The position numbers and the translations under genes are program-made. Of a stretch of 64,000 nt of DNA, positions 33,348 to 56,741 are shown piece by piece (the first letter of the stretch is position 1; each line of letters opens with the position of its first letter). Location: assembly GCA_964270895.1 (NCBI GenBank), contig OZ185440.1; one strand, written 5' to 3'. This DNA is from Podarcis filfolensis. Its lineage: Eukaryota. The notes under the pieces are model-generated. The model worked only from the letters and a program-made list of their open reading frames with translations, searched no databases and was not told where the DNA came from.

Positions 33348-33482
33348 CAGGCGTGGCCAAATTTGGCCCTCTAGCTGTTTGGGACTACAACTCCCATCAT
33401 CCCTAGCTAACAGGACCAGTGGTCAGGGATGATGGGAATTGTAGTCCCAAAACAGCTAGAGGGCCAAGTTTGGCCATGCCTG
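33348..33482. mobile_element. 135-bp hAT MITE
   Basis: TIRs CAGGCGTGGCCAAA; 8-bp TSD GCATAGGG. Confidence 0.92.
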
Positions 33483-34046
33483 GCATAGGGGATGTTAAGA
33501 AAGAGGAATGTGCCGGGAGAGCAGAGTAAGAAGTCTTTGAGGCCATTTGAGCCATCTCCTCAGGGTACACTTGTCAAAAGGGTCACCCACCCAATTTCAC
33601 TGCCTCCCAAAGGTAGGGAGAAGAGCTAGAACTCTGATGGGAAAATGCAAAACATGAACAGTCCTCCATCTTCACCCAAAGTGTAGAGTCGTTATAATGG
33701 ACTGAGGGTATCAGCTGCCTTGGATGACAAGCCATGTAAGCGTGGGAAATGTATGGGGAAAGGTAGAGCACATCTTAAGATTCTAGGCTCACTCCCTGGT
33801 ATCCCCAGGGTTGGGGCAGTTCTCCTCTGCTGGAGTCCTTTGAGAGATGCTGTGAGGCCGAGCAGCTGCTTCTGGGCAGCACGAACCAAAACCCAAGCTT
33901 AGGTCTAAGGAGGCACGGTTTATGAGACAACTGTGTGAGATCTCTACCCATTTTATTTTATTTTAAAGAAAGCAGTAATTGTGAGGCTCTGCAAGATGCT
34001 GATTTTGGTTATTGGAACCCTCCACCCCTCCCATTCTGCTTTTCAG

Positions 34047-34148
34047 GCAATGGAAAGCAAGCTCCTTGTTGGAGGGAAAAATATTGTGGACCACACAAAC
34101 GAGCAGCAAAAAATCCTGGAGCAGAAGCGGCAGGAGATTGCTGAGCAG
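34047..34148 (+). CDS. KIF3B: KIF3B exon 3 ([34 protein letters not shown])
   Basis: tttcag|GCA ... CAG|gtgag; 102 nt. Confidence 0.97.
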
Positions 34149-35041
34149 GTGAGAGGGAGAGGGAGAAGTGCATGCGTTGAGATGGGTTGCAGGGGTCCCA
34201 GAGTGTGCAGAACGGGGTGGGGGGGAGCCTGTGGCTGGACTACAACTCCCATCATTCCTTCCCACTGGCCCTTCTTGCTGGGGCTGATGAAAGTTGGAGG
34301 GCTGAACATTCTCCACTGCCCTGTGCTGTGGCCCTGGGAAGCTCATAGCACCTTTTTCCATTCCACCGAGGATCAAGGATGTCTATAACATTTGGGCAGA
34401 ACCCACTGGGAACATTTCCTGGGCAAGCATCTTTGGAATCCATTCAGCAGCAATGCGAATTTAATAAGAGCCTTGCTGGATCATTTATTTATTTATTAGA
34501 TTTATAAACCAGTTTGGATCAGAATAGTACTTGGTCTAATCCAGCATCCTGTTGCCCACAGTGGAAAACTTCATGCATCTAGAAAGTGCATTTGGGGTTG
34601 AAGGCAAATTCCCCCCTTTTCAACTCAAGCTCTGCAACAATTGGTATTCAAAGGTATACTTCCTCTGTATATGGAGGTTCTGTTTAGCATGGCTAATGCT
34701 GCTGTTTTGAAAGTCCTTTCAGTTTCAATGATGAGTGTACCAGGGATGTTCTCAGTGGCTTTTGCTCTTACTGTTTCCTTTTTTAATACATGAGGTTCAT
34801 GAACATAATTGCTTGAAAACTTTGAGAACAGCTGAAAGCTAGTAAAATGCAAACACTGCAAGATCTTCAAGAAGCTGCATGAGAAAAGCTATTTTACTGA
34901 ACTTTGCTTACTTTCTTCGTTGGTTCTTCCCCTTTTTCATCCTTTAAAACCCCTCTGGCCAATTAACACTTTGCAGAAAGGAAGCCCATCTTTTGAAATC
35001 CAAGACTTTTGCTCTTTCCTTTAAGGTGTGAGAACTTAGAA

Positions 35042-35291
35042 CAGGGGTCAGCAACCTTTCTCAGCCGTGGGCCGGTCCACCATCCCTCAGACCATGTGGT
35101 GGGCTGGACTATATTTTGGAAAAAAATATGAACAAATTCCTATGCCCCACAAATAACCCAGAGATGCATTTTAAATAAAAGGACACATTCTACTCATGTA
35201 AAAACACGCTGATTCCCAGACCATCCGCAGGCCGGATTTAGAAGGCGATTGGGCTGGATCCGGCCCCCGGGCCTTAGGTTGCCTACCCCTG
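35042..35291. mobile_element. hAT-Charlie-like MITE
   Basis: CAGGGGTCAGCAACC...GGTTGCCTACCCCTG; 8-bp TSD ACTTAGAA. Confidence 0.92.
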
Positions 35292-35850
35292 ACTTAGAAT
35301 GTAGGGGTGGGATTTGTCTCAGTTGATGCACAAGCAGAACAAAGCCTTCCTATGCAACAGGACACCCCTCTCTCTGCCCCATGTGTCCCCTGAATCTGCT
35401 CTGGTGTTTGGTGGAAAACCAAAAACAGGTTTAGGAGGAGGAGAGAAGGGAAATCCTATTATGCAAGTGGACCTCATTCTGCTCACAGATCCACCTCTTA
35501 CTGCCACATTCCACTCTGTGGCTGCAGTCCAGTGCACTTGGAAATGAGCCCATTGAATCTAGTGGTGCATGGTAAACATGGTTTGGGGTCAGTCTGAAAG
35601 TCTGTTCCGAGGTCATCAGTAAGCCTTTCAGCAATTCCAGACGAAGTTCAGGCTTCTTGAGCCTCACAATATTTCCCCTTAAAATTATTTGGAACAAAGT
35701 GAACCTTCAGAATAAAATCCTTCAAAAATACACAGCATTGATTGGTAACGCCTTGTGTAAATTCTCTCACCCCCTGCAAATGAATGGCATGTACCCTGAC
35801 AGCGCTGAAGTCCAGGCCAAAAAAAAGGTCATCTTTGTTGTCTCCCGCAG

Positions 35851-35973
35851 AAACGACGAGAGCGAGAAATCCAACAGCAGATGGAGAGTCGGGATGAGGA
35901 GACCTTGGAGCTGAAGGAGACCTACAGCTCCCTGCAGCAGGAAGTGGATATCAAGACTAAAAAACTGAAAAAG
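35851..35973 (+). CDS. KIF3B: KIF3B exon 4 ([17 protein letters not shown]...KTKKLKK)
   Basis: cccgcag|AAA ... AAG|gtgag; 123 nt. Confidence 0.97.
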
Positions 35974-36467
35974 GTGAGTGGCCTCCCTGGAGGTGGGCTG
36001 GCAGGTATGTACAGGTACTGTATGTGAGCTCTGAAAATAAGCATGGATGTGGCCAAGTCCAGAATTGGGCTTCCCATCTTCAAGGCACTAAGATGTGATA
36101 GTTTTCTCTGCGCTTTTAGGGCAGGCAATAGTTAATTGTCTCAAAGGAGTCAGAGTGGATCAAACCCCCTGAATTTCCCCCCACCCAAACCAGGCCCAGC
36201 TTGCATCTCCTCATGAAGAATAAGGCCCAGTGGTTCTCTTTGACCTTGGGGGAGATGCAAAGCTTTTTGACAGATGCATGTTAAAATTCAGAGTTTTTGG
36301 CTGGAAAATTCTCCACTTGCATGACCTGGTAAGCTGTTGTAATTTTACAGGTTCTAACTAGTTCTATGAGCCATAATTATTATACGTAATCGGTTGTGAT
36401 GCTATGTAGTCATTGATTTTTATTTTTTTTTGCAATAGAATTAATATTTTGCTAGGTTGGTTTCAGA

Positions 36468-36805
36468 CAGGGCTGGGGAACCTCAGGCCTGAAATCCAAC
36501 TGTGGCCCTCCAGACTATGTTACCAAGCCCTTGGGACAGTTCCCAGACCACAGCCTTCGCTGACCCTGCTTGGATCCTTGAGTGTTTTAGCCAAGCTGAA
36601 ATGTGTCCTCTTATATTACCTCCTGCTTGTCTGAATGGAGGGCAGAGAGGGCTTGCAGAAACTAGCCTACTGTACAAAGGTGACATTTGCATTAGTTGCC
36701 CCACCCACTTTACCTCTGGCCCCGCCCTCCACTGGTACGTGGCCCTCGCAAGCTTGCCCTGAAGGGAAGACGGCCCCTTGGGCTGAAAAGTCTTCCCCAC
36801 CCCCA
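36468..36805. mobile_element. hAT MITE, older
   Basis: Imperfect TIRs CAGGGCTGGGGAA; 8-bp TSD GTTTCAGA. Confidence 0.75.
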
Positions 36806-36846
36806 GTTTCAGAGATTCATTTTCCACCAATATTTCTGCGTGCCTA

Positions 36847-37430
36847 ATTCCTAAGGAAAAACCCTTATCTCCTGGTCTGCCCCGCAGAGGACCTTAAGGT
36901 CCATGAATAACCATCGTTTAGAGGTCCCGGGCCCTAAGGAAGTCAGACTATCCTCCACCAGGGCCAGGGCCTTCTCAGTGATGGCTCCAACCTGGTGGAA
37001 TGCTCTGTCCCAGGAGACCAGGGCCCTGCAGGATTTAACCTCCTTCTGTTGGGCCTGTAAGACAGAGCTATTCTGCCTAGCCTTTAATTTGAATTCAGCC
37101 TGATCTTTTATTTCCCTTCTCTTCCCTCCCCCTCTGCTTTTATGAAGATCACCCGCTCTGAGACCCCACAGCTAATTCTCCCCTGGCCTCCTCACTGGCC
37201 CAAGTAGGACCAATTCAGCCAGCTAGCCCTGGGGATGATCTAATTGATTTTTGATTTTTCAATTTTATTGTTATTCATGTTTTTATACTGCATTTTATGC
37301 TGCTTTTATAATTAAGTGTTTTAAAGTGTTTTAAATTTGTTGTTAGCCACCCTGAGCTCGGTTTTTGAACCGGGAAGGGTGGGGTATAAATAAAAATAAA
37401 AATTATTATTATTATTATTATTATTATCAT
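36847..37430 (+). mobile_element. 5'-truncated L2-type LINE with (ATT)n tail
   Basis: RARAFSVMAPTWWNALSQETRALQDL...; tail grades into (ATC)n up to 37451. Confidence 0.9.
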
Positions 37431-37674
37431 CATCATCATCATCATCATCATCTAAAGAAGGCAGCTGGACTGCGCAGCCTTTGCCCTTTATTTTTAACCA
37501 AAACCTGAGCTTATGGCATACCATTGTGGGGCACAATCCACCAAGAGGTTTCCCTGCACAAACCCTTTTGAAGTGACCGGGAGCTGTGCAAGAACTGAGC
37601 CGCTCGCTCGTGAGGCAGAGGTGGTAGGCTTGGCGTTTTGTGTTGTAGGCCATGACTCTGGCTCTCTCTTTCAG

Positions 37675-37793
37675 CTCTTTTCTAAGCTGCAAGCCGTGAA
37701 GGCTGAAATCCACGACCTTCAGGAGGAGCACATCAAAGAACGCCAGGAGCTGGAGCAAACCCAGAATGAGCTCACACGGGAGCTGAAGCTCAA
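37675..37793 (+). CDS. KIF3B: KIF3B exon 5 ([19 protein letters not shown]...ELKL-K)
   Basis: ctttcag|CTC ... AA|gtagg; 119 nt. Confidence 0.97.
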
Positions 37794-37947
37794 GTAGGTT
37801 TTTCAGCCAGCTGTGCGTTGCTCTCGAGGGCTTGGGAATGGCCTGCCGAGCAAGCTGTCTGCTGGCCAGGAATGAAAAGCGAATATTTCACTTTTCCTGA
37901 GGCTGCTTGGAGTGTGCTTGCAACATTCCCTTTGTTGATCTCTGCAG

Positions 37948-38061
37948 GCACCTGATTATCGAGAACTTTATTCCCTTGGAGGAGAAAAACAAGATCATGA
38001 ACAGGTCGTTCTTCGATGAGGAGGAGGACCAGTGGAAACTGCACCCCATCACCCGCTTGGA
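37948..38061 (+). CDS. KIF3B: KIF3B exon 6 ([38 protein letters not shown])
   Basis: tctgcag|G ... GA|gtgag; 114 nt. Confidence 0.97.
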
Positions 38062-38559
38062 GTGAGTTGGCGGCCCCCTTGAGCTGGGCTGTAGGGTTTG
38101 GGGAAAGGGGGACACACCCTCCATTATCTCTTTAGATTTTCAGTTCATCCGGCCCATTCCCTGCAGCTCTGGACTTGAAATCCAAGCTTAGCTCCATTTT
38201 TCTCAGTTGGTGGCCCACCCAAGGGCAGCAGACTTTCTGCTCCCCTCCTACTTTTCCAGCCCCAATGATCACGCCACCATTCTGCAGCTCAGGTTGATTG
38301 AGGCAGGACTCTGGCTGGCAGCAGCTCTGCTTCTGATCCTGCAAGGCGGTCGCTGCAGCCTTAAATGTTATATGAGAGATATTGTGATGTAACTACCGCT
38401 ACTTGAACGCTGCAGATGCAACATGGAGTTGTGTCCCCAGCTGCCTAAAAGCGGGAATTTAGCTCAGAGCTTGCTAATGTATTTTTCTATTTAGACAAAT
38501 ATTTGTGTACTGCTGCGTCAAAGCAGTTTACAGAAATCAAAAGAAAAAAGAAAAAACAT

Positions 38560-38837
38560 AAAAAGTTAAAAAGCAGACATCAATTAACCATTGTGGAAGC
38601 TCATATTTTTGCCTACATAAGGCAACAGAACAGAAATGTTTGCAGCAGGCATTTAAAAGTTAGCACAGAAGGCGTCTGCTGAATCTCTAGTGGCAGTGAG
38701 TTCCAAAGGACTTGTAGGATGACCAACGACACTCTTGCAGATCTCAGTGACTGAGCAGGGAAAGAAGGGCTCAAGTGATCCCTGAGGCCCCCTGGACCTA
38801 AGTTGAAAATTAATACAAGGACCTTGAACCTCAGCAA
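38560..38837 (-). mobile_element. Old L2-type LINE fragment
   Basis: RFKVLVL...LRDHLSP...SLRSA...LWNSLPLEIQQ. Confidence 0.7.
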
Positions 38838-39645
38838 CTAGTTCTGAGAGGCATTTTGCCTCTGAAAGTCTCTTTTGTCCTTCATGGATTTCTGTATCGC
38901 CAGCTTCCTCTGCAAGTGCAACTTGCAAAGGGTCAGGAGGAGGAAACCATTGGTTTGCCCAGTGCTGCCTCTTAAGGCAGCAAAATACCGTGTGCTGGAC
39001 CTAGTACAGTAACGGCATTGCATTGCACATTGATGTTCATCCTCCCAGCTGGGATGTTAATCCACATGCTGCAAGATAAAATCAAGGCAGGGCCCAAGGT
39101 ATGACAGCTGAGGACAGATGGAAAGGAGCAGGCTGAGAAGTGTGGCTTGTGGGGAGTGAAGAATGAAGTCGCATCTGGCGGCATATCTCATCCTGGAGAT
39201 TTCCAAATTTCTACACAAAGCTTTCCCCGCATGGTGTTTGTAATGAACAAAGAATATATTAATCAAGAGATCTCTTCCTGGGCCCGTTCCTTTCAAGTAT
39301 AAAGTGTCCCCAGCATCAGCGTCGGGAAACTGCTGACACAGCTTTGCTATATAAAGCCTCCGTTAGCAAATTTAGATCTGCTGACCGACAAGGAAACCAA
39401 AATCTTCCCTCCTGTCTTTTGCACAGGGTACACCTCATAGGAAAAGCAAGCAGGGTAGATGGCTAGGGGACAGTTCTACCATTGCCAGGTTGAGGGAGAC
39501 ATGCGGCAATACCGGTTTGTGTGTCAGTGTCCGGCTGGAGGACATGCCCGTGCTTGCACAAACGTAACTGCCAGCGAAAACATAGGCGCGCTTGGATTCC
39601 TGCTCTTTTTTCATGGGGATAAGCATTCATATAATAAGGGCAGAA

Positions 39646-40068
39646 TTGTTGTTTAGTCGTTTAGTTGTGTCCGACTCTTCATGACCCCCTGGACCAGAGC
39701 ACGCCAGGCACTCCTGTCTTCCACTGCCTCCCGCAGTTTGGTCAAACTCATGTTAGTAGCTTCGAGAACACTGTCCAACCATCTCCGTCCTCTGTCATCC
39801 CCTTCTCCTTGTGCCCTCCATCTTTCCCAACATCAGGGTCTTTTCCAGGGAGTCTTCTCTTCTCATGAGGTGGCCAAAGTCTTGGAGCCTCAGCTTCAGG
39901 ATCTGTCCTTCCAGTGAGCGCTCAGGGCTGATTTCCTTCAGAATGGAGAGGTTGGATCTTCTTGCAGTCCATGGGACTCTCAAGAGTCTCCTCCAGCATC
40001 ATAATTCAAAAGCATCAATTCTTCGGCAGTCAGCCTTCTTTATGGTCCAGCTCTCACTTCCATACATC
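39646..40068 (-). mobile_element. BovB (RTE) LINE 3' fragment
   Basis: Near-identical to the 19838 copy. Confidence 0.93.
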
Positions 40069-40297
40069 TGGACCATAAAGAATAGTTATATTTTAAACAG
40101 ACTAATTGTGTTTGTGGTGGAGGATTGCAGTAGCTAAACAGCACTGAGGAACATAGGGTTCTTATGTCGAGCTGGACCATTGGTCCATCTGTCTCAGTAC
40201 TGTCTGCACTGGCTGGCAGCAACTCTGCAGGGGCATTCCCAAACCCAACTGGAGATGTTGCCAGGGACTGAACCTGGAACCTTCTGCATGCCAAGCA

Positions 40298-40298
<1 letters not shown>

Positions 40299-40345
<47 letters not shown>

Positions 40346-40749
40346 TTATTATTTATACCCTGTCCATCTGGCTGGGTTTCCCCAGCCACTCTGGGCGGCT
40401 TCCAACAAAGTATTAAAATACAGTAGTCTGTTAAACATTAAAAGCTTCCCTAAACAGGGCTGCATTCAGATGTCTTCTAAAAATTTGGTAGTTGTTTTTC
40501 TCTTTGACATCTGGTGGGAGGGCATTCCACAGGGCGGGGGCCACCACCGAGAAGGCCCTCTGCCTGGTTCCCTGCAACTTGCCTTCTCGCAGTGAGGGAA
40601 CCACCAGAAGGCCCTTGGCGCTGGACCTCAGTGTCCGGGCAGAATGATGGGGGTGGAGATGCTCCTTCAGGTATACTGGACCAAAGCCGTTTAGTGCTTT
40701 AAAGGTCAGCACCAACACTTTGAATTGTGCCTGGAAACGTACTGGGAGC
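40299..40749 (-). mobile_element. L2-type LINE 3' fragment with (AAT)n tail
   Basis: LVLTFKALNGFGPVYLKEHL...RAFSVVAPALWNALP. Confidence 0.9.
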
Positions 40750-40787
40750 TAATAATAATGCTACTAATACTACTAATAATAATAGTA

Positions 40788-41026
40788 CAGTCATACTTTG
40801 GTTGTCAAACAGTATCTGTTCCGGAAGTCCGACTTCCAAAAACATTCGACAACCAAGGCGCAGCTTCCCATTGGCTGCAGGAGCTTCCTGCACTCAATCG
40901 GAAGCCGTCTCGGATGTTCGGATTCCAAAGAACGTTCACAAACCGGAACACTCACTTCTGGGTTTGTGGTGTTTGGGAGCCAAAACGTTTGACTCGCAAG
41001 GCGTTCGGGATCCAAGGTATTGACTG
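40788..41026. mobile_element. Tigger-like MITE inserted in the (TAA)n tail of a second L2 remnant
   Basis: TA-CAGTCATAC...GTATTGACTG-TA; the L2 tail resumes at 41027; related to the 62218 copy. Confidence 0.8.
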
Positions 41027-42291
41027 TAATAATTTTTATTTATATCCCACCTGTCTGGCTGGGTTTGCCCAGCCACTCTGGGTGACTTACAGAATTTATA
41101 AAAACAAAACAAAACATCAAACGTTAAAAGCCAGGTGCTCTACAGCTGAGCAGATCAGGCCCTTCCCATAATAATCCTTGTGGGAAAAGTTGTTCTGATA
41201 TTTAAATATTTGAATGAAAGAGAGGCAAGCCCTCCTGACGGAAGCACTTGCATTGTCGTTTTTTCAAACACCTACAGCTCAGGCGTGGTCTCAGAGAGAA
41301 CTCTGGCTATGGTAGGTTTCATACAAGTGGCAGCATCCACACATCTGTCTGTTCCTACTCCTGCAGCTCCCAGTTAAATTGTGGGATAGGTGCTCCTCTT
41401 CTCCCTGGATCAACCCCGTTTCCCTTGTTCTCATGGTAGCTCTTAGCGACCAAGACCAGTCTGAAGGTTTCATATTTTTTTTAAAGAAATATTTATTAAA
41501 GTTTTACAAAAACAAAAACATAATAAAAGAAAAAAGAGAAATAAAAATACAACATATAAACACACAGAAAAAATAAGAAAAATTAAAAACAATTCCATTT
41601 TTCATAACATAAAACTCATTTGCTTGTTTCTTTGACCTCCTCACACCTCCCCTTCTTGTATTCCCATTTGAATAATCAAATCAGCAAATCCTTACCCTCT
41701 TTCATTTATCTTATCTCTATAACTTAACATTTTATAACTCTGTATTTTCATCCATTATCAATTCATTTTTGCATATTCTTATTAACTTTGTTACTAATAC
41801 CATTTATTTCCAATCCAACATCATTTTAATTATGTTTTTACCTATTCATAACCCTTTTTCCATATTCTCTTAAAGCATTACAGCTGGAAACCACTTAATT
41901 TCTATCCAATATCATTCTAACAGTCATTAATTTTACAATATTTCTGTAGATAGTCTTTAAATTTCTTCCAACAGTCTGAAGGTTTCCTGACGGTGCTGGC
42001 CCTGGGCTTGCCAGGCAGCTGCCATCATGTAGCCTGGCAGCCAGGAGTGGCACAGTAGCAGCTAGGACTCTCCTTCCTTGGAGGCTGGGTGGCCATCTGC
42101 CATGGATGCTTTAGCTGAGTTTCCTGCATTGCAGGGGGTTGGACTAGATGACCCTGGGGTCCCTTCCAAGATTTTCCTGATGCGGCAATTGCAGGCTGGT
42201 TGGAGAGACTCAGTGGGTCCGAAGTTGGGCCGCTTGTGGAGGGAAGGGGGCTGGCTCCAGCAGTGGGCTTGATGTCCTTTTCCCTTGCCAG

Positions 42292-42397
42292 GAATCAACA
42301 GATGATGAAGAGGCCGGTGTCAGCTGTGGGATACAAGAGGCCCCTGAGCCAGCATGCTAAGATGTCCATGATGGTTCGCCCAGAAGCCCGGTATAGG
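42292..42397 (+). CDS. KIF3B: KIF3B exon 7 (NQQMMKRPVSAVGYKRPLSQHAKMSMMVRPEARYR)
   Basis: ttgccag|G ... AGG|gtaag; 106 nt. Confidence 0.97.
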
Positions 42398-42492
42398 GTA
42401 AGCTCTCGCTCAGATCTGCATAAAATCGTGAATGGTGTGGAGGGTTCATCGTGGGAGAAGCTCGCCATCTCCCCAAATACAAAAGACCTGAG

Positions 42493-43158
42493 ATCGGACT
42501 CTGCTAATTACAGGCCAGTTAGTCTCCTAAGCATTATCAGTAAACTATATGCTGCCCACTTATGTGATAAACTGGAGGATTGGATGGAGCGAGAACATGT
42601 CCTTACAGAAGCACAAACTGCTTTCAGGGCAAACCGGTCCACTTTAGACCAAGGCCTAGTACTCCAACATCTTGTGGAAAAATACACCTCAAGAAAAGGA
42701 GGATCCCTCTACGCAGCTTTCACAGATTTTAAATCTGCCTTCGATTTAGTATCACAAGATAGGCTTTGGGAAAAACTTAGCGCCTCAAACGTAGACAGAC
42801 GTCTACTGTGTCTTATCTGCAGTTTATATGAAAACACTCGGGTCTGGGTTAGGTGTGACCGACAGGGCCATTTATGCAAGGAAATCCAAACCTCCCATGG
42901 TGTTAAACAAGGCTGCGTCCTTGCGCCTACTTTATTCAACTTCTACATTAACTCCTTAGCAGGAAACATGGAGAAAGAAAATGCCCACCCCCCTAAATTG
43001 GCTGGTATATTTGATAATTTTTTTAACTGCCGCTATATCTGAATTGTCTCTGTTGTGCCCGATTGCAATTCGGTGTATTCCTGTTGTGTTTTGTGGTTTT
43101 CCTGATGTTGTGGGTGACCCGGAGCTGGTCTGTGACCGTAATAATAAAATTCAAATTC
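42493..43158 (+). mobile_element. Non-LTR retroelement (RTE-like), 5'-truncated and internally deleted
   Basis: RT motifs NYRPVSLLS, FRANRSTLDQ, FTDFKSAFD, GVKQGCVLAPTLF; 3' end GACCGTAATAATAAA-(ATTCAA)n; 11-bp TSD AAAGACCTGAG. Confidence 0.88.
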
Positions 43159-44057
43159 AAAGACCTGAGGTGCTAAAACGTTTAGGCAGGAGGTTTACAC
43201 CATGCAAAAAGAAGCACTTCGAAGTATAAGTCACCTTTCGCTCTCTACGCTGCACAGTGTTGCAGTGGCCGGGGGCTGGGAGGGTGGCTGCTTGTGCCAC
43301 TCAGGTGCACAGCTTTTGTCTTCGAGAAGAATGCCACGTCTGCACCCATAACCAGAGGTGCATCTCAGCACTGTGCCCAGGGTTGCAGGGCTTCGCTGAG
43401 GCACCGATTGCTACTTTTCATCAAGAAAATTCCCTGTTAGTCATGCTGTTTGTTTGGTTCCTGATGCAGCATGACAATTCACAACAGGCCTATATGTCAG
43501 GGGTGGGGAAGCAGTTATTTCCCTTCCACCCGAAACATTTTCGTCTGTAAATTTTTAACATATGCAATATTTGGTTGTCCTCCAGTAGGAGAGCCAGGCT
43601 GTCTTTAAAAATTATTATTTATCTTATTTACATGTATGTATGTATCAGAAAGTATAAGTACAGGTGCCAAATAAAATAAAACTAAATTAGAAGGGGATAT
43701 CTCAGACTAAACATACAGGAACACATTTCTGTTCCAAAAACAAACATAAAAAAGAATACCAGAAGATTCCAAGTAACACAAATAGGTTTAAATTATCGTG
43801 TACCTTATTACTCCAGTACATTGTGAAAAGACACCATTTCTCAATACTGTTGTCGACTCTCTCTGGTTCTCACCATATATGCAAGATGTTAGTTAGCCAT
43901 TCTCTCGTGGATGGCGTTCTCATTTCCCCCACAGTTTTGACAAATATTAATTCTGGCAGCAGTTAAGTGATGCTACATTAATTCCCTGTCCTCTCTTAGA
44001 GCAGTTTACATAACATATCTAAATAGTAAAGTTGGAGGAGCCCATGGGTAAAGTATA

Positions 44058-44415
44058 CAGGGACATGGGTGGCGCTGTGGGTTAAACCACAGAGCCTAAG
44101 GCTTTCCGATCCGAAGGTCGGCAGTTCGAATCGCCACGACGGGGTGAGCTCCCGTTGCTCGGTCCCTGCTCCTGCCAACCTAGCAGTTCGAAAGCACGTC
44201 AAAGTGCAAGTAGATAAATAGGTACCACTCCGGCAGGAAGGTAAACGGCGTTTCTGTGCACTGCTCTGGTTTGCCAGAAGCGGCTTAGTCATGCTGGCCA
44301 CATGACCTGGAAGCTGTATGCCGGCTCCCTCGGCCAGTAAAGCAAGATGAGCGCCGCAACCCCAGAGTCATCTGCGACTGGACCTAATGGTCAGGGGTCC
44401 CTTTACCTTTACCTT
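44058..44415 (+). mobile_element. Full-length Sauria SINE
   Basis: Same consensus as 17062; 14-bp TSD ATGGGTAAAGTATA. Confidence 0.92.
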
Positions 44416-45112
44416 ATGGGTAAAGTATAGCCCAAGATATCGACCGGAGGGTCAACTCAGCCCCCTGCTAACTGTCTCCGTGTTGTGATGCTGTGGAAGA
44501 AATCCCCACCTCAAGTGAACATAGAGACACTCAGACCCAGCTTCCTGCAATACCTGCCGTCCAACTCTCTGCATAGCAAAACATGTTTCCTAAAGCAAAG
44601 CCCTCTGCTTGGCTGAAGACTTATAACAAAAGGGACCTGGCCTCTTGTTCTCTGCAAAATGCCCAGCATACTGATGGCCTCCTATAAATAAGTAATACAG
44701 GCTTACTGAGCAGGAAGAGTATGGGTCGGGGCCAGGGGGACCAGGAAGCCAGAAAAAGGGGGCAAGCTGTCAAATTATCGCTGGAATGAAGGCGCCTATT
44801 GGAAAATGCAGGATGCCAAACATTTCAGTGTGTCGTCTTTATCGGGAGCAAAGAGATTTCTATTCCACTTATAGTGAGGGGTCATTTTGAATTCAAAATG
44901 CTGTGGACAGCTTGAGCTTTCTAATAAATATCTCTGCAATCTTTTAGAAGTATAATCCACCTGAGTTCCCGTGACTGTCCTTTCGTTACCTACAATGGGG
45001 GGAACCTTTGCCCGATTTCTGCTGCGAAACAGAGCACATGTGAGCAATAAAGTTGTCTGCTGGCTTGTGGGCCTAGGTGCCTGTCTGAACTCTCCTGGTT
45101 CTGATCCCTCAG

Positions 45113-45291
45113 GCAGAAAACATTGTACTGCTGGAACTGGATATGCCTAGCCGGACGACCCGGGACTATGAGGGCCCAGCCATTGCCCCCAAAGTACAAG
45201 CAGCTCTCGAGGCTGCTTTGCAAGAAGAAGATGAGATACAAGTGGACGCTTCCACATTTGAGAGTACATCCAACAAGAAGTCAAAATCCAG
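45113..45291 (+). CDS. KIF3B: KIF3B exon 8 ([22 protein letters not shown]...NKKSKS-R)
   Basis: ccctcag|GCA ... AG|gtgag; 179 nt. Confidence 0.97.
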
Positions 45292-46138
45292 GTGAGCTCT
45301 GGTTGTTGGAAGGAGAGCAGATAACACACACAATTCCGGAAGCCCATATCCTGGGTAGTCAAGTTCAGGCTGAATTTGTTAGCACCGGACCACTTAATTT
45401 GAGGGGATGGTTTTTGCACAGTAAGCAGTATTTGGTAGAGGTGAAGGGTTTTCTAAAATGTTTGATAAAATGGGAGAGGCTTGGCATGCTGCTGCCCCCT
45501 TTTCTAAAAGCAGCCATAGAAGGAAAACTATTTGCAACAACTGCTTGACTGTCAGCTGGAAACCTGGTTGTTTTCTTAAAGCGGTGGTTCCCAAAGTGGG
45601 CAGTATTGCTCCCTGGGGAGCAGTGGGATTACTTGGGAGACGCTAAGAGGCAAGGGGTGGAAGGGGTTGGTGGTGGTGTAAATGACAATCAGACTCTGAA
45701 AAGTTGGTATGACAATATCAAGCTCATCACTTTTGTTGAATTAATGGAACTAAATGGTTTTAATTTGATTTTGAATAAATGTGCAGCAAATGGTTACTAC
45801 TTTGAACTTTATTGTGCTGCTATCATCCTTGGTGGGTTGTGAAAACTTCTGTTCTGAATGCTGCTTTTTTGTAGGGTTGGGTTTTATGTAACCAAGGGGG
45901 AGGTGGCCCAATTTTGGGGTGGAGCCACTGTCTTAAACAGAACAGCCTGGCCATCCCAAAGCAACGTAGTCGGTAAGGTTTGGTAGTAATAAGCCAATTC
46001 TAAAGCAGATTGTCGCACAAGAAGCCAATAATTCATCATTCAGCTCTACGAAATGGCTTTCCTTGTTTATCCCCGACACGTTTTGAGAAGCTACGCTCTT
46101 CGTTCGTCACATATTCTTCGGGTTCTTCTGTTTTCCAG

Positions 46139-46229
46139 GCCTAAAACGGGAAGGAAATCGGGTGGCTCTTCGTCCAGTCCATCTGGGTCTCAGCTCTACC
46201 CTCAGTCTCGTGGGCTGGTCCCCAAGTAA
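46139..46229 (+). CDS. KIF3B: KIF3B last coding exon (PKTGRKS...LYPQSRGLVPK*)
   Basis: ttttccag|G, stop TAA. Joined CDS 2244 nt = 747 aa. Confidence 0.97.
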
Positions 46230-49581: not shown

Positions 49582-50136
49582 AATTCAATTGGATTTATTG
49601 TATGTAAAATAATAATAATAAAGCCTCTTCCTTCCCCTCCTCATTGTTTTTAGTTACATTTTTTCATATGCTGTTTCACATTCACAGATTTTCTTTTGGA
49701 AAAGGTGTTCATACATTGATGGGAAACTTGAGTCCTAGAATTTTATTAGATTTCTAAACTCATCCCATATTTTAAGCCCTTGATCCCAGTAGAGTTCCTG
49801 CTGTTCCCTTTTGCCACCAGACTTTTTAACCAGTATGATTATATAATCATGTATCTGAATCTTTCCCCACCCACCTATACTTCATTTCCCACCTGTTATT
49901 GAGGCCATTATTTCAGAAGGAGCAGGAGCTGGTAGTTTTCAACCTCACCCTGTCCTTCCTCCAAGGTTGCTGTTTGAGGTAGGTAGGCACAAGGAAAGAG
50001 GCAGTGCTCTGCCATTTAATCCCAGTTCCTGAACGTGTGAGTGCGTGTGTGTGTTAGGTGGTCAAAGTGTCAGAAACATTACCTAGTTCCCACAACCTCT
50101 TTCGCTGGGCATATTTAAGTAGAGGCTACCTGCCAG

Positions 50137-50402
50137 CTTCACAGATTATGAAGCTGAGGCTCCAAGACTTTGGCCACCTCATGAGAAGAGAAGACTCCCT
50201 GGAAAAGACCCTGATGGTGGGAAAGATGGAGGGCACAAGGAGAAGGGGACGACGGAGGATGAGATGGTTCGACAGTGTTGTCGAAGCTATAAACATGAGT
50301 CTGACCAAACTGCGGGAGGCAGTGGAAGACAGGAGTGCCTGGCGTGCTCTGGTCCAGGGGGTCACGAAGAGGCGGACACGACTAAACGACTAAACAACAA
50401 CA
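50137..50402 (+). mobile_element. BovB 3' fragment
   Basis: KLRLQDFGHLMRREDSLEKTLM...RTRLND; (CAA)n tail; 9-bp TSD ACCTGCCAG. Confidence 0.93.
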
Positions 50403-51204: not shown

Positions 51205-51296
51205 TGGTCAAGACTGCCTCTGCAATGTGTGGGGGGGGGGTGACATGGTTGCCCTTGACTACTAGCCCCTGCTCAGTCCCCCGTCATGCTGGAATC
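51205..51296 (-). pseudogene. TARDBP-like: TARDBP-like exon 6 5' remnant (LVVKGNHV-TPPP-HIAEA vs TDP-43 LIIKGISV-HISNA)
   Basis: Short similarity in the expected order after exon 5; poly-C insertion; acceptor not certain; no Gly-rich domain recognised. Confidence 0.5.
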
Positions 51297-51469
51297 TCAG
51301 CTAAAGCTTCTACGACAGACAGCCACCCAATAGGACAAGAATTAGTCTGTCTTGTCACTCATGAGCCTGCTGCACTTAAGTTTTTCTATACAGTAAGAAC
51401 TTCATGAACAATGCTTAAGAATAAGTTGCCCACACATCAGCAAAAGACCAGGGCACTTTGCACAGATAC

Positions 51470-51634
51470 CTGATCATCAGCAAACGTAACAGGCAAAGCC
51501 TCCAAAGGGTTATTCAACGAAGACATCAATGACTTCTCCAAATCGGCAAATAAACTCACAGATATCATCTGCATTCATGTCTTCGGTGCAATCCAGCACA
51601 CCTTCCTCGGATTTGAAAATTCTTCTGAAGTTGG
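51470..51634 (-). pseudogene. TARDBP-like: TARDBP-like exon 5 (RRM2), disabled
   Basis: caccag|CCA ... GATGATCAG|gtatct, exactly at the TDP-43 exon 5 ends. CTEDMNADDICEFICRFGEVIDVFVE*PF vs [29 protein letters not shown] (15/29 identical). Deletions of 4 and 2 nt, plus a TAA at 51510-12. Confidence 0.88.
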
Positions 51635-51841
51635 CTGGTGCCAATGCAGAACAAAAGATTAATATTATTTATTGAATTTTTTATATTAGAAAAACAATTT
51701 AAAAGCAATTTAAAAGAAGAAGCAGTACCCTCTTGCTGGGCAGCAGCAGTCCTTATGAAAACTGTCAGGCCCCGCCCTGGGCCAGGTGGAGAGAGGCAGG
51801 AACAGGGCCCTTAGACTCTCAGCAGGGTGGTCCTTGCCAGG

Positions 51842-51844
<3 letters not shown>

Positions 51845-51889
<45 letters not shown>
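51845..51889. repeat. (CAG)15 trinucleotide repeat
   Basis: Direct reading; lies in intron 4 of the TARDBP-like relic. Confidence 0.95.
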
Positions 51890-51890
<1 letters not shown>

Positions 51891-52200
51891 CCTTAGATTT
51901 TAATTAATACAAATGTTTTTGTCTAGCTGTTTTAATAACCAACATACTGCATGCAGAGTTGTGTACACACATATCTGCTTTCTTGCACAGAAGCCCTTCT
52001 GCTATGAACACTTCACACATTTCCATGTGCCTGTGCAGTAAAAACACCAGAAACAGAACTTATGTCAAGCTTAGAAGACACTCCGTTACTTATTTTGAGA
52101 AATGGGGAGAAAAAGAACAACCATCTCTGGATTCATCTGTGCTTCTGAACAAACACTGTGAGAGATTAACGTGACACTTTGGCTTAAATCGCAAGGAAAC

Positions 52201-52342
52201 TTCCTTGAGGTTCTATTTCAGAAGCTGGGATCGAATGTGGCGGTCCAAGCCTCTCTACCATGACTTTCATCTGTGCTTCGTAGTCGGCAAATCTCACCAG
52301 ACCGATCCGCTTCAACTGGCTGGATCTGCAATCAGTCATCAC
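52201..52342 (-). pseudogene. TARDBP-like: TARDBP-like exon 4 (RRM1 second half)
   Basis: ctcttctcctgaccctag|GTG. VMTDCRSSQLKRIGLVRFADYEAQMKVMVER vs [31 protein letters not shown] (14/31 identical). 3' third diverged; donor GAA|gtttcc is weak. Confidence 0.85.
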
Positions 52343-53150
52343 CTAGGGTCAGGAGAAGAGATGAGATGGCTGTAACAACAATGGCATTGCACTACCAATT
52401 GCGTACCAATTCTACCAGCTATTTCATGGGTTGAATTTCAAAATGAAGTAGTGCGGAAAATAATGTTTGATGATTTTCAGCGGAAGGTTTCATCCTGCTT
52501 TCATCATCTTCCCTTGCTAACAGCTGCAGCCTAGAGACCAGGCTCCACTGTCCCTCAACAGCCATTCTGTCTGGCTGCAGAAGAGGGAGAGAATGGAGAG
52601 AGGCCCACTCCATGAATTCTGCCGAGAAACCAGCTCAGCCATGTAACTTTCGGGGTTCTCTCTCTCTCGACTCAGATTTAGACAAACCACCCCAGCTACC
52701 AGCATGAAAAGGTCAGAACTCTTCCTATTTTTATCACAATGACTTCAACTGACCAAACTCAATACCGAAACGGACTAAGACCACAAATTCTGCTGAATTC
52801 TGAAACAGATGCGGTTGCTCAGTCCCAGTCCCTTGCTTCAGTGGCCCTCAAGGGACGACTTGTTTCCATCATGCGTTGATTGAACCACAGCCACTTAGTC
52901 CCAGCACCGAAGAAGACAAAAGTCCGAGGGCAGCAAATGGCATCTCAACAATCCTGTTCCCAAAAAGAAATTTCTGTTCTCGATACCAGGCTCGGATACC
53001 ATTTTTTATGGTTATTTATTTATTTATTTTTGGGTAATTTCTTTCTTGCAGTGGGTGAAGCAATATCTCTTAAGAAACCACAACAAACAGCAGTTACATT
53101 TGGATGCTTTGGCCAGTCATGGCTCATGGAAGGGTAGTTACGCCAGATAC

Positions 53151-53296
53151 CTGGACTCTGAGAACTGCTCCAAATCTGCTGAAGAACTCCTCCAGTTTGC
53201 GCTCGGACGTTTCCCATGCGAGCCCATAAACCACCAGGTCAGCGGTACCAAGACATTCTTGTTTCACATCCATTTCCTCCATTTTCAAATTCTTGC
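53151..53296 (-). pseudogene. TARDBP-like: TARDBP-like exon 3 (NLS region and RRM1 first half), reading frame intact
   Basis: ctttag|GC ... GTCCAG|gtatct; 146 nt, phase 1 to 0 as in TARDBP. ADLVVYGLAWETSERKLEEFFSRFGAVLRVQ vs [31 protein letters not shown] (18/31 identical). Confidence 0.9.
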
Positions 53297-53494
53297 CTAA
53301 AGATAGATGTGTCCATCAAACATAGTCAGCACTTTAAAAAATAGCTAAACAAATATTCCCATTAGTTGCACTGAAAAATTTGAGTGAAGCAGATCATTCT
53401 AGAGCTACGTGAAACTCAATCCTAGGTTACTCATCGGGTTTAAGTTTTTCACTCTGAAGTACCACTGTGTTCAAATAGGGCCAATTCCTTAATA

Positions 53495-53756
53495 CAGTGG
53501 TGCCCCGCAAGACGAATGCCTCGTAAAACGAAAAACGTGCAAGACAAAAGGGTTTTTCAGTTTTTGTGTCGCTTCGCAAGACGATTTTCCCTTTGGGCTT
53601 GCTTCTGCAAGACGAAACGTCTTGCAAGTTCTTGCGAGTTTGTTTCCTTTTTCTTAAAGCCGCTAAGCCGCTAATAGCCGTGCTTCGCAAGACGAAAAAA
53701 CCGCAAGAGGAAGAGACTCGCAGAACGGATTAATTTCATCTTGCGAGGCACCACTG
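53495..53756. mobile_element. Tigger-like MITE (GCAAGACGAA-rich subfamily)
   Basis: TA-CAGTGGTGCC...GGCACCACTG-TA; related to 58886. Confidence 0.88.
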
Positions 53757-54341
53757 TAACTATTTAGGATTACAGCCTTGAGGTGTATTTGCTTTTTTTG
53801 TTTGTTTGTTTGTTTACCAATTGCTCCCACTTGCAATCCTTTTCATCTTTAAAACCACTGTTAGCGTGTCCCATATATTTAAAAGACGAAAAGAAACTAT
53901 GTAATTTAGTTGATCGATGAGGGGTCTAAAAATAAAAGATGCCCAATTGCCTAACAATTTGAGCAACTTACAGGGCTCTGGAAATCTAGGACAAACTAAA
54001 AGAAAATAGATTATCAATATATAGGTTTTCATAGTCAAAGAACCCATAATTCTTTTTTTAAAAAAGGCAAATACAGCACATAAAAACAAGGACTGAGCCA
54101 TTTCAGAGATCACAGGAAACTGAAGCTTCCCAGGCAGTACACGGCACAGGGAATACTTGCATCACCTTTGGGATGATCACAGAATCAGAGTTGGAAGGGA
54201 CCTCTGAGGGTCATCTAGTCCAACCCCTGCAATGAAGGAACCTCCACTCAAGCAGCTGTGATAGATGGCCATGCAGCTCTCTCCCATAGGAGAGCATAAG
54301 GCAGCCAGTTAAATCTTCTTCCTTCCATTTACCCCTATAAA

Positions 54342-54680
54342 AGTAAAGGGTAAAGGGACCCCTGACCATTAGGTCCAGTCGTGGCCGACTCTGGGGTTGC
54401 GGCGCTCATCTCGCTTTACTGGCCGAGGGAGCCGGTGTACAGCTTCCGAGTCATGTGGCCAACAAGACTAAGCCGCTTCTGGCAAACCAGAGCAGTGCAC
54501 AGAAACGTCGTTTACCTTCCCGCCGGAGCGGTACCTATTTATCTACTTGCACTTTGAGCTGCTTTCAAACTACTAGGTTGGCAGGAGCTGGGACTGAGCA
54601 ACGGGAGCTCACCCCGTCGCGGGGATTCGAACCGCCAATCAGAAGTCTTCTGATTGGCAAGTCCTAGGCTCTGTGGTTTA
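54342..54680 (-). mobile_element. Sauria SINE, slightly 5'-truncated
   Basis: Same consensus; carries an internal perfected palindrome at 54634-54658. Confidence 0.9.
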
Positions 54681-54816
54681 TTAGGACACAAAAGCAATAA
54701 CCTCATGTCTGGGAAAGGGAAAGTAAGGCAGAAGAGGCAGGGCTGGCTTTAAGGGCATAGCAATCTGCTCTTTTGAGCAAGAACTTCATGTCTGAGGCAG
54801 TTAGGCAGCATCTTAC

Positions 54817-55400
54817 CCGCCTTAACATGTGCAACACATGCACAGAAGTGGGGCAGGGCAAGATTTCCCCCCACCCCACTACTCTGAAATAAATAACCCC
54901 CTTGATGTTTTTTGCAGCGTCTGAGGAGCTTGCTGTTTTGCAGGCTGTTGGGCAATTGGCTGTGGCTGCGAGGGGGGTGGGGGGAGAGCTGAGGCAGAGA
55001 CGGTTTTGCAGTGATTGTAACTGTTTTGCATGGTGACATCTCTGCAAAACCCTATCTGCAAAACCGATCTTTGCCTCGGCTCTCCCGTGGAATACCGTTA
55101 CAATCCCTGCAAACATTTCATCCCCCCCAATAGTTAATTTTAGTTAATTTTCCAAATTTATAACAAACATAAAAAACATTACAATATAAAAAAGACAAGC
55201 GAACAAACATATATCCTAACTGTAAAAATTCCAATTTAATTATCGTTACTGGATGACTTCCTCGAGCCCCCCTAGCTGAGTTTCCATATAACTCATTGTA
55301 GCGGTTTTCCAATATCCCTGCAAACATTGCAAACGATTTCTCGGCACACCCCCAGCCACACCCGTGCCCAACATACACGCATGCACGCTTCCACATGATA
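54817..55400 (-). pseudogene. TARDBP-like: Tentative TARDBP-like exon 2 (N-terminal domain) remnant, broken by insertions
   Basis: TANCPTAC vs TAQFPGAC; KNIKGVIYFRVVGWG vs RLVEGILHAPDAGWG; strong phase-1 donor GCGG|gtaaga compatible with exon 3. Similarity is weak and frameshifted. Confidence 0.35.
55118..55313 (-). mobile_element. Short LINE-tail-like retro-insertion
   Basis: Flanked by the 15-bp direct repeat ATCCCTGCAAACATT (55103-117 and 55314-328); AT-rich 3' UTR-like body. Confidence 0.7.
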
Positions 55401-56354
55401 AGCTTTGCAGGCTTCACGGACTTCATATAATGAACTGTACAATGATTCTAAGAGCCTGGGGGTGCAGAAAGGCTGCCCCTGGACTGGGAGGCTCCATAAG
55501 GCCTTAGGAAGAGCTTGGCAGCTGGATGAGGCCAAGCGAGGCCCCGTCCCCCTAGCCTTGCGACAAGCAGCCCCCCAGAGATGCCCTTACCCGCAACAGG
55601 ATTCGAACGCAGAACCAGCCGCCCTCTCCCTTCCGTGGTTCCCAGCAAGGGGGAGTCCGACGCGTTGGCTGCCTGCGGTGCTACTTATCTCTCTCCCCCC
55701 CCCCATTTCTTTGTTTATTGCATTTATTATCCCACCTTCCCCCCCCAAAGATCTCTAGGTGGCGCACCTGGTTCTCCCCCTCCTCCACGTGTCACCCCAA
55801 CAACCACCCTGTGAGGTAGGTTAGGTCGAGAGGCAGTGAAGGGCCCACGGCCGAGTGGGGATTCGAACCCAGGTCCTTAGCCCGACACTCTAACCATTAT
55901 ACCACACTGCCGCCCCTCAGTGACATGTGGGCCGGCCCTCAGAACGGGGTCAGGGTCAGGGCTCTCCCGTCTCTCCCCGCCCGCCTCTCAACGGGCCAAC
56001 GCGGGAGCTGGGAGCGTTAACGGGTTTGCGCGTTCACACGAGGGCTGGACGCGCGAGTACCCGGATGTCTCGGCCTCTTCCCGGCTTCCCCCTCCCCGCT
56101 TGGCGCCGCCGCCCATCATGCACCGCGGCAGCCTCCCCGCAGCGTCGCCAGCGCCGGAGCGGAAGCCCCCTCCTCTTCCGGGCGGGAGAGGGCGCATTCT
56201 CCCCGCCGCGGCGCCTTCTGGGATTTGTAGGCCCGACGCCCTTGCCGCGCGTGCCCGCCTCCGCTCCCCGCTCCGCTCGCCAAGACTACATCTCCCGTCG
56301 GCCCGCGCGGCTTGTTTTCCTTCAAACCCCCCCGAGCGAGCCCTCTCCCTCCCT

Positions 56355-56554
56355 NNNNNNNNNNNNNNNNNNNNNNNNNNNNNNNNNNNNNNNNNNNNNN
56401 NNNNNNNNNNNNNNNNNNNNNNNNNNNNNNNNNNNNNNNNNNNNNNNNNNNNNNNNNNNNNNNNNNNNNNNNNNNNNNNNNNNNNNNNNNNNNNNNNNNN
56501 NNNNNNNNNNNNNNNNNNNNNNNNNNNNNNNNNNNNNNNNNNNNNNNNNNNNNN
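56355..56554. other. Assembly gap (200 N)
   Basis: Direct reading. Confidence 1.
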
Positions 56555-56681: not shown

Positions 56682-56741
56682 ATGAAGGAGATGAAGCAGA
56701 GGAGGAAGAAGGAGCGCACGTGGGCCGAGGCCGCCCGCCTG
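56682..56741 (+). CDS. ASXL1: ASXL1 coding exon 1 (MKEMKQRRKKERTWAEAARL), start of the HARE-HTH domain; exon 2 not found in window
   Basis: Matches the ASXL1 N-terminus KKKKERTWAEAARL; donor CTG|gtgag in phase 0; synteny with KIF3B. Confidence 0.93.

Follow-up and report, generated by a model that had tools for sequence, protein, structure and literature searches.

A partial, intron-containing TARDBP copy between KIF3B and ASXL1 in lacertid lizards

Background

In this work we ask how a sequence resembling TARDBP, the gene of TDP-43, came to lie on the minus strand between KIF3B and ASXL1 in the lizard Podarcis filfolensis, and whether it represents a second TDP-43 gene of vertebrates or a copy of another kind. 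The window, i.e. the whole stretch of 64,000 nucleotides (nt) analysed here, belongs to contig OZ185440.1 of assembly GCA_964270895.1. An earlier note, made from the letters of the window alone, had read positions 51205-53296 as the relic of an intron-containing TARDBP paralog and had proposed that it might be very ancient. Our comparisons indicate that the locus is, in all probability, an unprocessed (intron-retaining) partial TARDBP pseudogene, a DNA copy made in the squamate lineage, which decays essentially neutrally. Homology, exon-intron collinearity, lesions, phylogenetic position and taxon distribution, all observed directly, form the basis of this reading.

The relic was present in all four lacertid loci examined, namely this window, Podarcis muralis (L007), a Podarcis-like assembly (GCA_947686815.1, L006) and Lacerta agilis (L002). 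TARDBP loci used in the comparison were those of the skink Lerista edwardsae (KAJ6651065, L008), the rattlesnake Crotalus adamanteus (KAK9391910, L010) and a bird (L009), in each of which an intact TARDBP was seen, together with Xenopus laevis TARDBP (L011) and seahorse tardbpl (L001).

Results and discussion

Three blocks collinear with TARDBP exons 3-5

The reference exons 3, 4 and 5 of TARDBP measure 164, 141 and 171 nt, respectively (exon 5 has 168 nt in frog), and encode part of the two RNA recognition motifs (RRM1 and RRM2) of TDP-43. Nucleotide alignment to them delimited three collinear blocks in the window:

53296-53151, minus strand: relic exon 3, TDP-43 amino acids (aa) ~80-134, nuclear localization signal region and first half of RRM1; an in-frame deletion of 18 nt leaves 146 nt of the 164 nt
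52342-52217, minus strand: relic exon 4, covering the second half of RRM1; an in-frame deletion of 15 nt leaves 126 nt of the 141 nt
51634-51470, minus strand: relic exon 5, spanning the linker and most of RRM2; 165 nt long where TARDBP has 171 nt

On this strand 53294-53151 translates as KNLKMEEMDVKQECLGTADLVVYGLAWETSERKLEEFFSRFGAVLRVQ and 52342-52201 as VMTDCRSSQLKRIGLVRFADYEAQMKVMVERLGPPHSIPASEIEPQG; two frames are needed to read 51634-51470, which gives ...PRKVC / DCTEDMNADDICEFICRFGEVIDVFVE(stop)PFGGFA / VTFADDQ. Each block translation was searched alone against all solved structures (177,635 sequences), and the top match was TDP-43 for exon 3 (expectation value, E, 6e-10), exon 4 (E 0.02) and exon 5 (E 6e-7). 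For the exon 3 and exon 5 pieces the next RRM family was weaker by 3-5 orders of magnitude, hnRNP D-like at E 2e-6 being the runner-up for exon 3. With catshark TDP-43 (P0059) as a query, tblastn over the 64-kb window gave collinear matches at aa 84-135 (46% identity), 135-165 (42%) and 187-240 (41% plus 89%), and beyond the three blocks only matches at noise level. A nucleotide profile built from TARDBP only matched relic exons 3, 4 and 5 at E 1.5e-19, 5.7e-12 and 3.6e-36, respectively. The match of the three blocks to TDP-43 is confirmed as real and far beyond chance; the exons described before are indeed collinear with TDP-43, which is the best-matching family, ahead of any other with RRMs. 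When the exon 3 translation was searched with HMMER against 1.84 billion representative sequences, only canonical TDP-43 exon fragments (at most 56% identity) and multi-RRM proteins were returned, and no closer intact relative.

Splice sites and lesions in the window

Splice sites are intact and placed as in TARDBP at five of six positions: at both ends of exon 3 (AG acceptor, donor CAG/GTATCTGG), at the acceptor of exon 4 (AG) and at both ends of exon 5 (AG acceptor, donor CAG/GTAT). The homologous donor of exon 4 is mutated from GT to AT at 52216-52215. The earlier note had seen AG and GT at the TARDBP boundaries and phases throughout, which nucleotide alignment bears out for the five sites and contradicts for the exon 4 donor. 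It had let exon 4 run to 52201, up to a GT at 52200 which is non-homologous and lies 17 nt further on; the homologous end is at 52217.

In this window the reading frame of relic exon 3 is open. Exon 5 has lost 4 nt near 51596 and 2 nt near 51491, with two frameshifts as the result, and it carries a premature stop:

51510-51512, minus strand: TAA stop in place of the Lys codon of IPKPF (RRM2), common to the four lacertid copies

The ribonucleoprotein motif 1 (RNP-1) of RRM1 reads KRIGLVRF in the relic against KGFGFVRF in TDP-43, so both phenylalanines are replaced; these two residues are required for RNA binding by TDP-43. A frameshift in the second half of exon 4 ('AWTATFDP') had been considered and was dropped, since nucleotide alignment gives the 15-nt in-frame deletion instead. 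The protein alignment behind the RNP-1 reading assumed this frameshift, and it was used for single residues, not for the tree or the topology tests.

Exon 2, which encodes the N-terminal domain, was not found by tblastn restricted to the flanks, by blastn with the skink and snake exons or by Smith-Waterman comparison against shuffled sequences, and the same protein and nucleotide searches failed to recover exon 6 (end of RRM2 and glycine-rich tail) or the 3' untranslated region (UTR). The exon 6 trace reported before is not confirmed, as neither restricted tblastn nor blastn returned it. Because neither exon 2 nor exon 6 is detectable, we regard the relic as a partial copy. A peptide resembling the N-terminal domain at 54963-54859 (E 0.03 in a 3-kb search) lacked nucleotide support and was taken as a chance match. 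A functional TARDBP encodes TDP-43_N, two intact RRMs and TDP-43_C in one open frame, and the relic does not.

Introns shared with squamate TARDBP

The intervals between and beside the relic exons correspond to TARDBP introns as follows:

53297-53474, minus strand: what is left of the 3' part of TARDBP intron 2, aligning collinearly with intron 2 of the skink (81 nt, 68%, E 5e-6) and of the snake (57 nt, 70%)
52343-53150, minus strand: relic intron 3, 808 nt against 793 nt in skink TARDBP
51635-52216, minus strand: relic intron 4, whose 3' end matches skink TARDBP intron 4 at 24/25 nt
51410-51469, minus strand: start of relic intron 5, where the donor GTAT survives and leads into CAAAGTGCCCT and additional similarity to skink intron 5; no exon 6 comes after it

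The last 160 nt and the first 12 nt of relic intron 3 match intron 3 of skink and snake TARDBP. In intron-against-intron blastn a 161-nt collinear match to skink intron 3 was obtained, along with further collinear matches to skink and snake in introns 2, 3 and 4, and no collinear match of the relic introns to those of bird TARDBP. The resemblance can be followed up to the exon borders. Upstream of exon 5 the relic and Lerista TARDBP are identical at 24 of 25 nt (TCTTTTGTTCTGCATTGGCACCAG); the sequence there is ATCTTTTGTTCTGCATTGGCACCAG in the relic, GTCTTTTGTTCTGCATTGGCACCAG in the skink and ...TTCTGCATTGGTACCAG in the snake, against an unrelated pyrimidine tract in the bird. After exon 3 the relic, skink and snake have GTATCTGGC in common where the bird has GTAAAATCC; CTCTTCTCC..ACCCTAG precedes exon 4 in both the relic and squamate TARDBP, and the CAAAGTGCCCT that follows exon 5 is common to relic and skink. 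The intron flanks of bird, frog and seahorse differ from those of the relic, and over 30-nt flanks identity to the relic is 60% for the skink and 29-45% for the others.

The relic introns are homologous to squamate TARDBP introns, and this is the decisive point on origin. Since parental introns are kept and the homology extends within them, as in an unprocessed pseudogene, the earlier suggestion of a DNA-level, intron-containing duplicate is upheld. A processed pseudogene was rejected, introns 3 and 4 being present and exon 5 being followed by no A-tract.

Retained introns could also be left by a semi-processed retrocopy, in which a long interspersed nuclear element (LINE) would have reverse-transcribed a TARDBP pre-mRNA whose splicing was incomplete or whose polyadenylation was intronic, giving an intron-containing copy truncated at its 5' and 3' ends. 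TARDBP is known for retained-intron transcripts, both ends of the copy fall inside introns, and LINE reverse-transcriptase fragments lie nearby (the RVT_1 open reading frame, ORF, at 42200-43042). Such an origin is nevertheless highly unlikely, since all internal introns are kept and priming from the normal 3' end should have brought exon 6 and the 3'UTR, both of which are absent; moreover, neither a poly(A) tract nor a target-site duplication can be seen beyond exon 5, though with age such traces would have been lost. With every internal intron in place and exon 6 lacking, the best fit is a non-allelic copy, made at the DNA level, of a segment from inside the gene.

Two further features were noticed around these introns. 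A (CAG)15 / (CTG)15 microsatellite at 51845-51889 lies in relic intron 4 beside an insertion relative to the skink intron, and ~260 bp at 53495-53756, just upstream of the intron 2 remnant, are present in this window and missing from both other Podarcis loci.

Phylogenetic position

At third codon positions identity to the relic falls from skink and snake (57% each) to bird (44%), frog (40%) and seahorse (32%), while at positions 1+2 it is flat against the same genes, at 66-70%. In a maximum likelihood tree the four lacertid relic copies group with skink and snake TARDBP. Support for the clade of relic, skink and snake, given as the Shimodaira-Hasegawa-like approximate likelihood ratio test and the ultrafast bootstrap (SH-aLRT/UFBoot), is 97.6/91 with exons and 99.3/98 with exons plus 30-nt flanks. 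Under the approximately unbiased (AU) test, a relic sister to all sauropsids is rejected (p 0.0046 and 5e-5). The branch of the relic greatly exceeds all others of the tree in length, and long-branch attraction would pull the relic towards frog or fish rather than towards the short squamate branches; the squamate placement is therefore conservative. The duplication arose within the squamate lineage, not as an ancient vertebrate paralog.

This bears directly on the origin raised as possible in the earlier note, that of an ohnolog from the two rounds (2R) of vertebrate genome duplication: a second TARDBP in the paralogon shared by KIF3B-ASXL1 and KIF3C-ASXL2, lost in mammals and decaying in reptiles. 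Human 20q11 and 1p35-36 share several paralogous gene pairs, which makes the location not absurd for it, and lungfish and newt have two TARDBP-like genes on different contigs. The AU tests, however, reject the attachment point that a 2R ohnolog requires (p 7e-5 and 5e-4), the relic contains squamate-specific TARDBP intron sequence, and its third-position identity follows the order squamate > bird > frog > fish. Only exons 3-5 are present, and the KIF3B-ASXL1 interval is empty in gar and in an iguanian, a cordylid and a viper (see below). Nor does teleost tardbpl stand where the ohnolog would: in seahorse it adjoins a 6PGD gene, not kif3b or asxl1, in agreement with the PGD-TARDBP neighbourhood of human 1p36 and with the published view of tardbpa and tardbpb as duplicates specific to teleosts (PMC3658164; bioRxiv 10.64898/2026.10.06.756961), and for the same reason it was discarded as an orthologue of the relic. 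Taken together, an ohnologous origin is so improbable that we abandon it. The earlier note had itself suggested a gene tree with TARDBP and had named nesting within lizard TARDBP as the result that would speak against an ohnolog; nesting of the relic within squamate TARDBP is what the tree shows.

Decay in lacertids

The copies have been damaged both jointly and separately. The TAA at the Lys codon of IPKPF occurs in all four and therefore predates lacertid divergence. In Podarcis muralis exon 5 stays in one frame over 57 codons, yet it has a second stop. In L006 exon 3 has TGG>TAG and exon 4 lacks 7 nt through a deletion; a 1-nt insertion at the end of exon 3 is common to L006 and Podarcis muralis. 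In Lacerta agilis exon 5 has a 2-nt deletion, the 3' half of exon 4 is lost and exon 3 is undetectable. Reading frames of the relic vary among lacertid species. Along the relic stem, codon positions 1+2 have changed at 0.47 substitutions per site, compared with at most 0.003 on the squamate TARDBP branches.

In a gap-free sliding comparison, identity of the relic exons among lacertids is no higher than that of the surrounding intergenic DNA. An apparent excess of conservation (96% vs 89%) proved to be an artefact of gap counting by blastn, the exons not being outliers once gaps are left out. Shared and independent disabling mutations without excess conservation, as found in unprocessed pseudogenes, mark neutral decay with an onset before lacertid divergence; the view of the relic as decaying, put forward before, is thus well founded on the shared TAA and on species-specific stops, frameshifts and deletions.

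As to the missing exon 3 of Lacerta, the stretch L002:29875-33285 is unalignable (~50% identity) beyond the equivalent of window position 52513, where an insertion or rearrangement has removed or displaced it.

Distribution and genomic setting

The relic lies within the 10.5-kb intergenic interval between KIF3B and ASXL1, head to head with the latter, as the earlier note had placed it:

30504-46226, plus strand: KIF3B coding exons; the coding sequence ends at 46226, and the relic lies 5-7 kb downstream of the stop codon
56682-56741, plus strand: ASXL1 coding exon 1 (MKEMKQRRKKERTWAEAARL), with its ATG at 56682, in a CpG-rich region

The 513-aa ORF at 30504-32045 is the kinesin motor exon of KIF3B and shares 99.8% identity with its counterparts in Podarcis muralis and Lacerta agilis.

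No TARDBP-like sequence was found by tblastn or with nhmmer profiles in the KIF3B-ASXL1 interval of Sceloporus undulatus (6.8 kb), Hemicordylus capensis, Vipera latastei or spotted gar; the TARDBP-only profile used in this search recovers the lacertid relic at E 1e-12 to 1e-36. In gar no gene is annotated between kif3b and asxl1. The proposal that the copy persisted in reptiles is not supported by these intervals, which hold no orthologue in the iguanian (Sceloporus), the cordylid (Hemicordylus), the viper or the gar. The relic is unannotated and has so far been seen only in lacertids.

Several other features of the region were recorded. A 280-aa ORF at 42200-43042 (plus strand) with an RVT_1 match (E 1e-22) is the in-frame continuation of the KIF3B exon 42293-42406 and is presumably a LINE fragment in an intron. 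Interspersed repeats at 50141-50400 and 54176-54680 recur several times, at 81-95% identity, within the KIF3B introns and flanking sequence of the Podarcis and Lacerta loci; the former overlaps an ORF at 50058-50393 ending in ...DRSAWRALVQGVTKRRTRLND and looks like the tail of a retroelement-derived repeat. Within the ASXL1 CpG island, shortly before the start codon of that gene, there is a run of 200 N (56355-56554).

Proposed course of events and age

We propose that a genomic DNA segment of at least ~2 kb, reaching from within intron 2 to within intron 5 of an ancestral squamate-lineage TARDBP and including exons 3, 4 and 5, would have been copied into the KIF3B-ASXL1 intergenic region after the lepidosaur-bird split and before the divergence of the sampled lacertids. 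Such a copy would have lacked a promoter, the start codon and N-terminal domain (exon 2) as well as the glycine-rich tail and 3'UTR (exon 6). It would have been unable to make TDP-43 and would have drifted essentially neutrally ever since. The in-frame deletions of exons 3 and 4, the loss of the two RNP-1 phenylalanines and of the exon 4 donor, and the RRM2 stop would all have accumulated before the lacertids diverged, with separate frameshifts, stops or deletions added later in each species. The copying mechanism, a copy that was 'dead on arrival' and its age are what we infer from the present state of the locus.

The topology bounds the duplication between the bird-lepidosaur split and the lacertid crown. 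The relic stem, at 0.47-0.54 substitutions per site, is ~10-12 times the per-lineage divergence of this window from Lacerta (~0.04), and by this rough measure the duplication would be old, of Mesozoic order, rather than a recent segmental duplicate. It may have preceded the split of the major squamate clades, in which case its absence elsewhere would be due to deletion or decay.

Weighing of the pseudogene reading

Several observations weigh against this account, or at least against its details. The ratio of change at positions 1+2 to that at position 3 on the stem is 0.62, not 1 (either synonymous change in TARDBP preceding the duplication or a time when the copy was under weak constraint could account for it). 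Three placements, with the relic as sister to skink, to snake or to both, lie within the AU confidence set, and the nucleotide tree covers TARDBP genes of five species only, namely skink, rattlesnake, bird, frog and seahorse. Exons 2 and 6 may have been copied and then deleted, 'partial at birth' being deduced from their absence. Finally, a 103-aa gene model annotated in L006 at 33598-37273 (minus strand), equivalent to window ~52300-56300, ends exactly where reading from the relic exon 4 acceptor would stop, and some transcription or splicing through the relic is conceivable.

The ratio of 0.62 leads to the question whether the copy once worked, as an RRM-only, TDP-43-like protein made from a borrowed promoter and dead before the lacertid radiation. 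A value below 1 and deletions in exons 3 and 4 that are multiples of three are what such a truncated paralog would leave behind. On the other side, no start-codon exon or N-terminal domain is detectable and the aromatic residues of RRM1 RNP-1 are replaced; on a crude clock, moreover, the change at positions 1+2 would already fill the time since the bird-lepidosaur split, and hardly any would be left for a period under constraint. It is therefore unlikely that the copy was functional for long, and we consider a formerly functional paralog distinctly improbable.

The L006 model raises a different question, i.e. whether the relic exons or splice sites have been exapted by a transcript, non-coding or with a short ORF, that starts in the bidirectional ASXL1 CpG island. 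The model runs from this island to a stop inside relic exon 4, brute-force exon models ending in '...VMTDPASRSGSVW(stop)' use the relic exon 4 acceptor (the enumeration of exon combinations for the 103-aa model gave too many solutions to choose among them), and five of the six splice sites are intact in this window. Against this, the 103-aa model has no Pfam match and the same gene is not called in the Podarcis muralis or Lacerta loci; Lacerta is devoid of exon 3 and half of exon 4, conservation among lacertids over the relic is no higher than around it, and the reading frames differ among species. We therefore judge exaptation of the fragment to be very unlikely. In its more specific form, in which the surviving splice sites serve a divergent lacertid transcript from the ASXL1 CpG-island promoter and TARDBP-derived exons enter a lineage-specific non-coding or micro-ORF transcript, it would be a little more doubtful still; if true, the exapted transcript might influence ASXL1 promoter activity.

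Conclusions and comparison with known systems

Under the reading of the locus as an unprocessed pseudogene, the lacertid KIF3B-ASXL1 interval should be annotated as holding a TARDBP-derived unprocessed pseudogene, and the relic should not be called a gene or a TDP-43 paralog. This removes the tempting but wrong inference of a second, ohnologous TDP-43 gene in vertebrates. Having a slowly evolving parent and a long neutral history, the copy could also provide a small internal calibrator of neutral substitution and indel rates in lacertids. Once scored as present or absent in teiids, amphisbaenians, geckos and tuatara, it could be used as a rare genomic change to trace squamate relationships.

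Mammalian TARDBP pseudogenes are typically processed, intronless retrocopies, unlike the relic, in which introns 3 and 4 and stretches of introns 2 and 5 have survived. The likeness to them (e.g. human TARDBPP1, PMC3658164) lies in being a non-functional TARDBP-derived sequence outside the parental locus; the same study suggests that the mammalian pseudogenes are remnants of a lost tardbpl. With teleost tardbpa/tardbpb (tardbp / tardbpl) the relic shares the existence of a second TARDBP-derived locus in a vertebrate genome, the teleost genes being full-length, functional products of the teleost-specific whole-genome duplication (PMC3658164; bioRxiv 10.64898/2026.10.06.756961). Pairs of TARDBP-like proteins were also noticed elsewhere, full-length and on different very large contigs in Protopterus (P0106/P0147) and Pleurodeles (P0131/P0133), and on the same contig in Ascaphus (P0083/P0096) and Leucoraja (P0070/P0078). 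As far as we can tell, these lungfish, newt, tailed frog and little skate pairs have no connection with the lacertid relic and are TARDBP duplicates either confined to their lineages or of older date.

Compared with squamate TARDBP of skink and rattlesnake, the relic has exons 3-5 collinear, in the same phases and, apart from the deletions, of the same lengths, with shared intron motifs; at the nucleotide level the exons are 65-66% identical, and the 30-nt intron flanks 60% (skink). It differs in the want of exons 1/2 and of exon 6 with the end of RRM2, the glycine-rich tail and the autoregulatory 3'UTR, in its RNP-1 (KRIGLVRF), in the stop within RRM2 and in its place in another chromosome region, beside KIF3B and ASXL1.

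The relic resembles the unprocessed pseudogenes and partial gene-fragment duplicates of vertebrates, in which introns stand at the parental positions with parental intron sequence still recognisable at an unlinked intergenic site, the gene ends are missing, and stops, frameshifts and a lost donor are joined by lesions acquired independently in each species. Unlike most such fragments, it is unusually old yet recognisable, with ~0.5 substitutions per site on its stem, and it is so far a lacertid possession.

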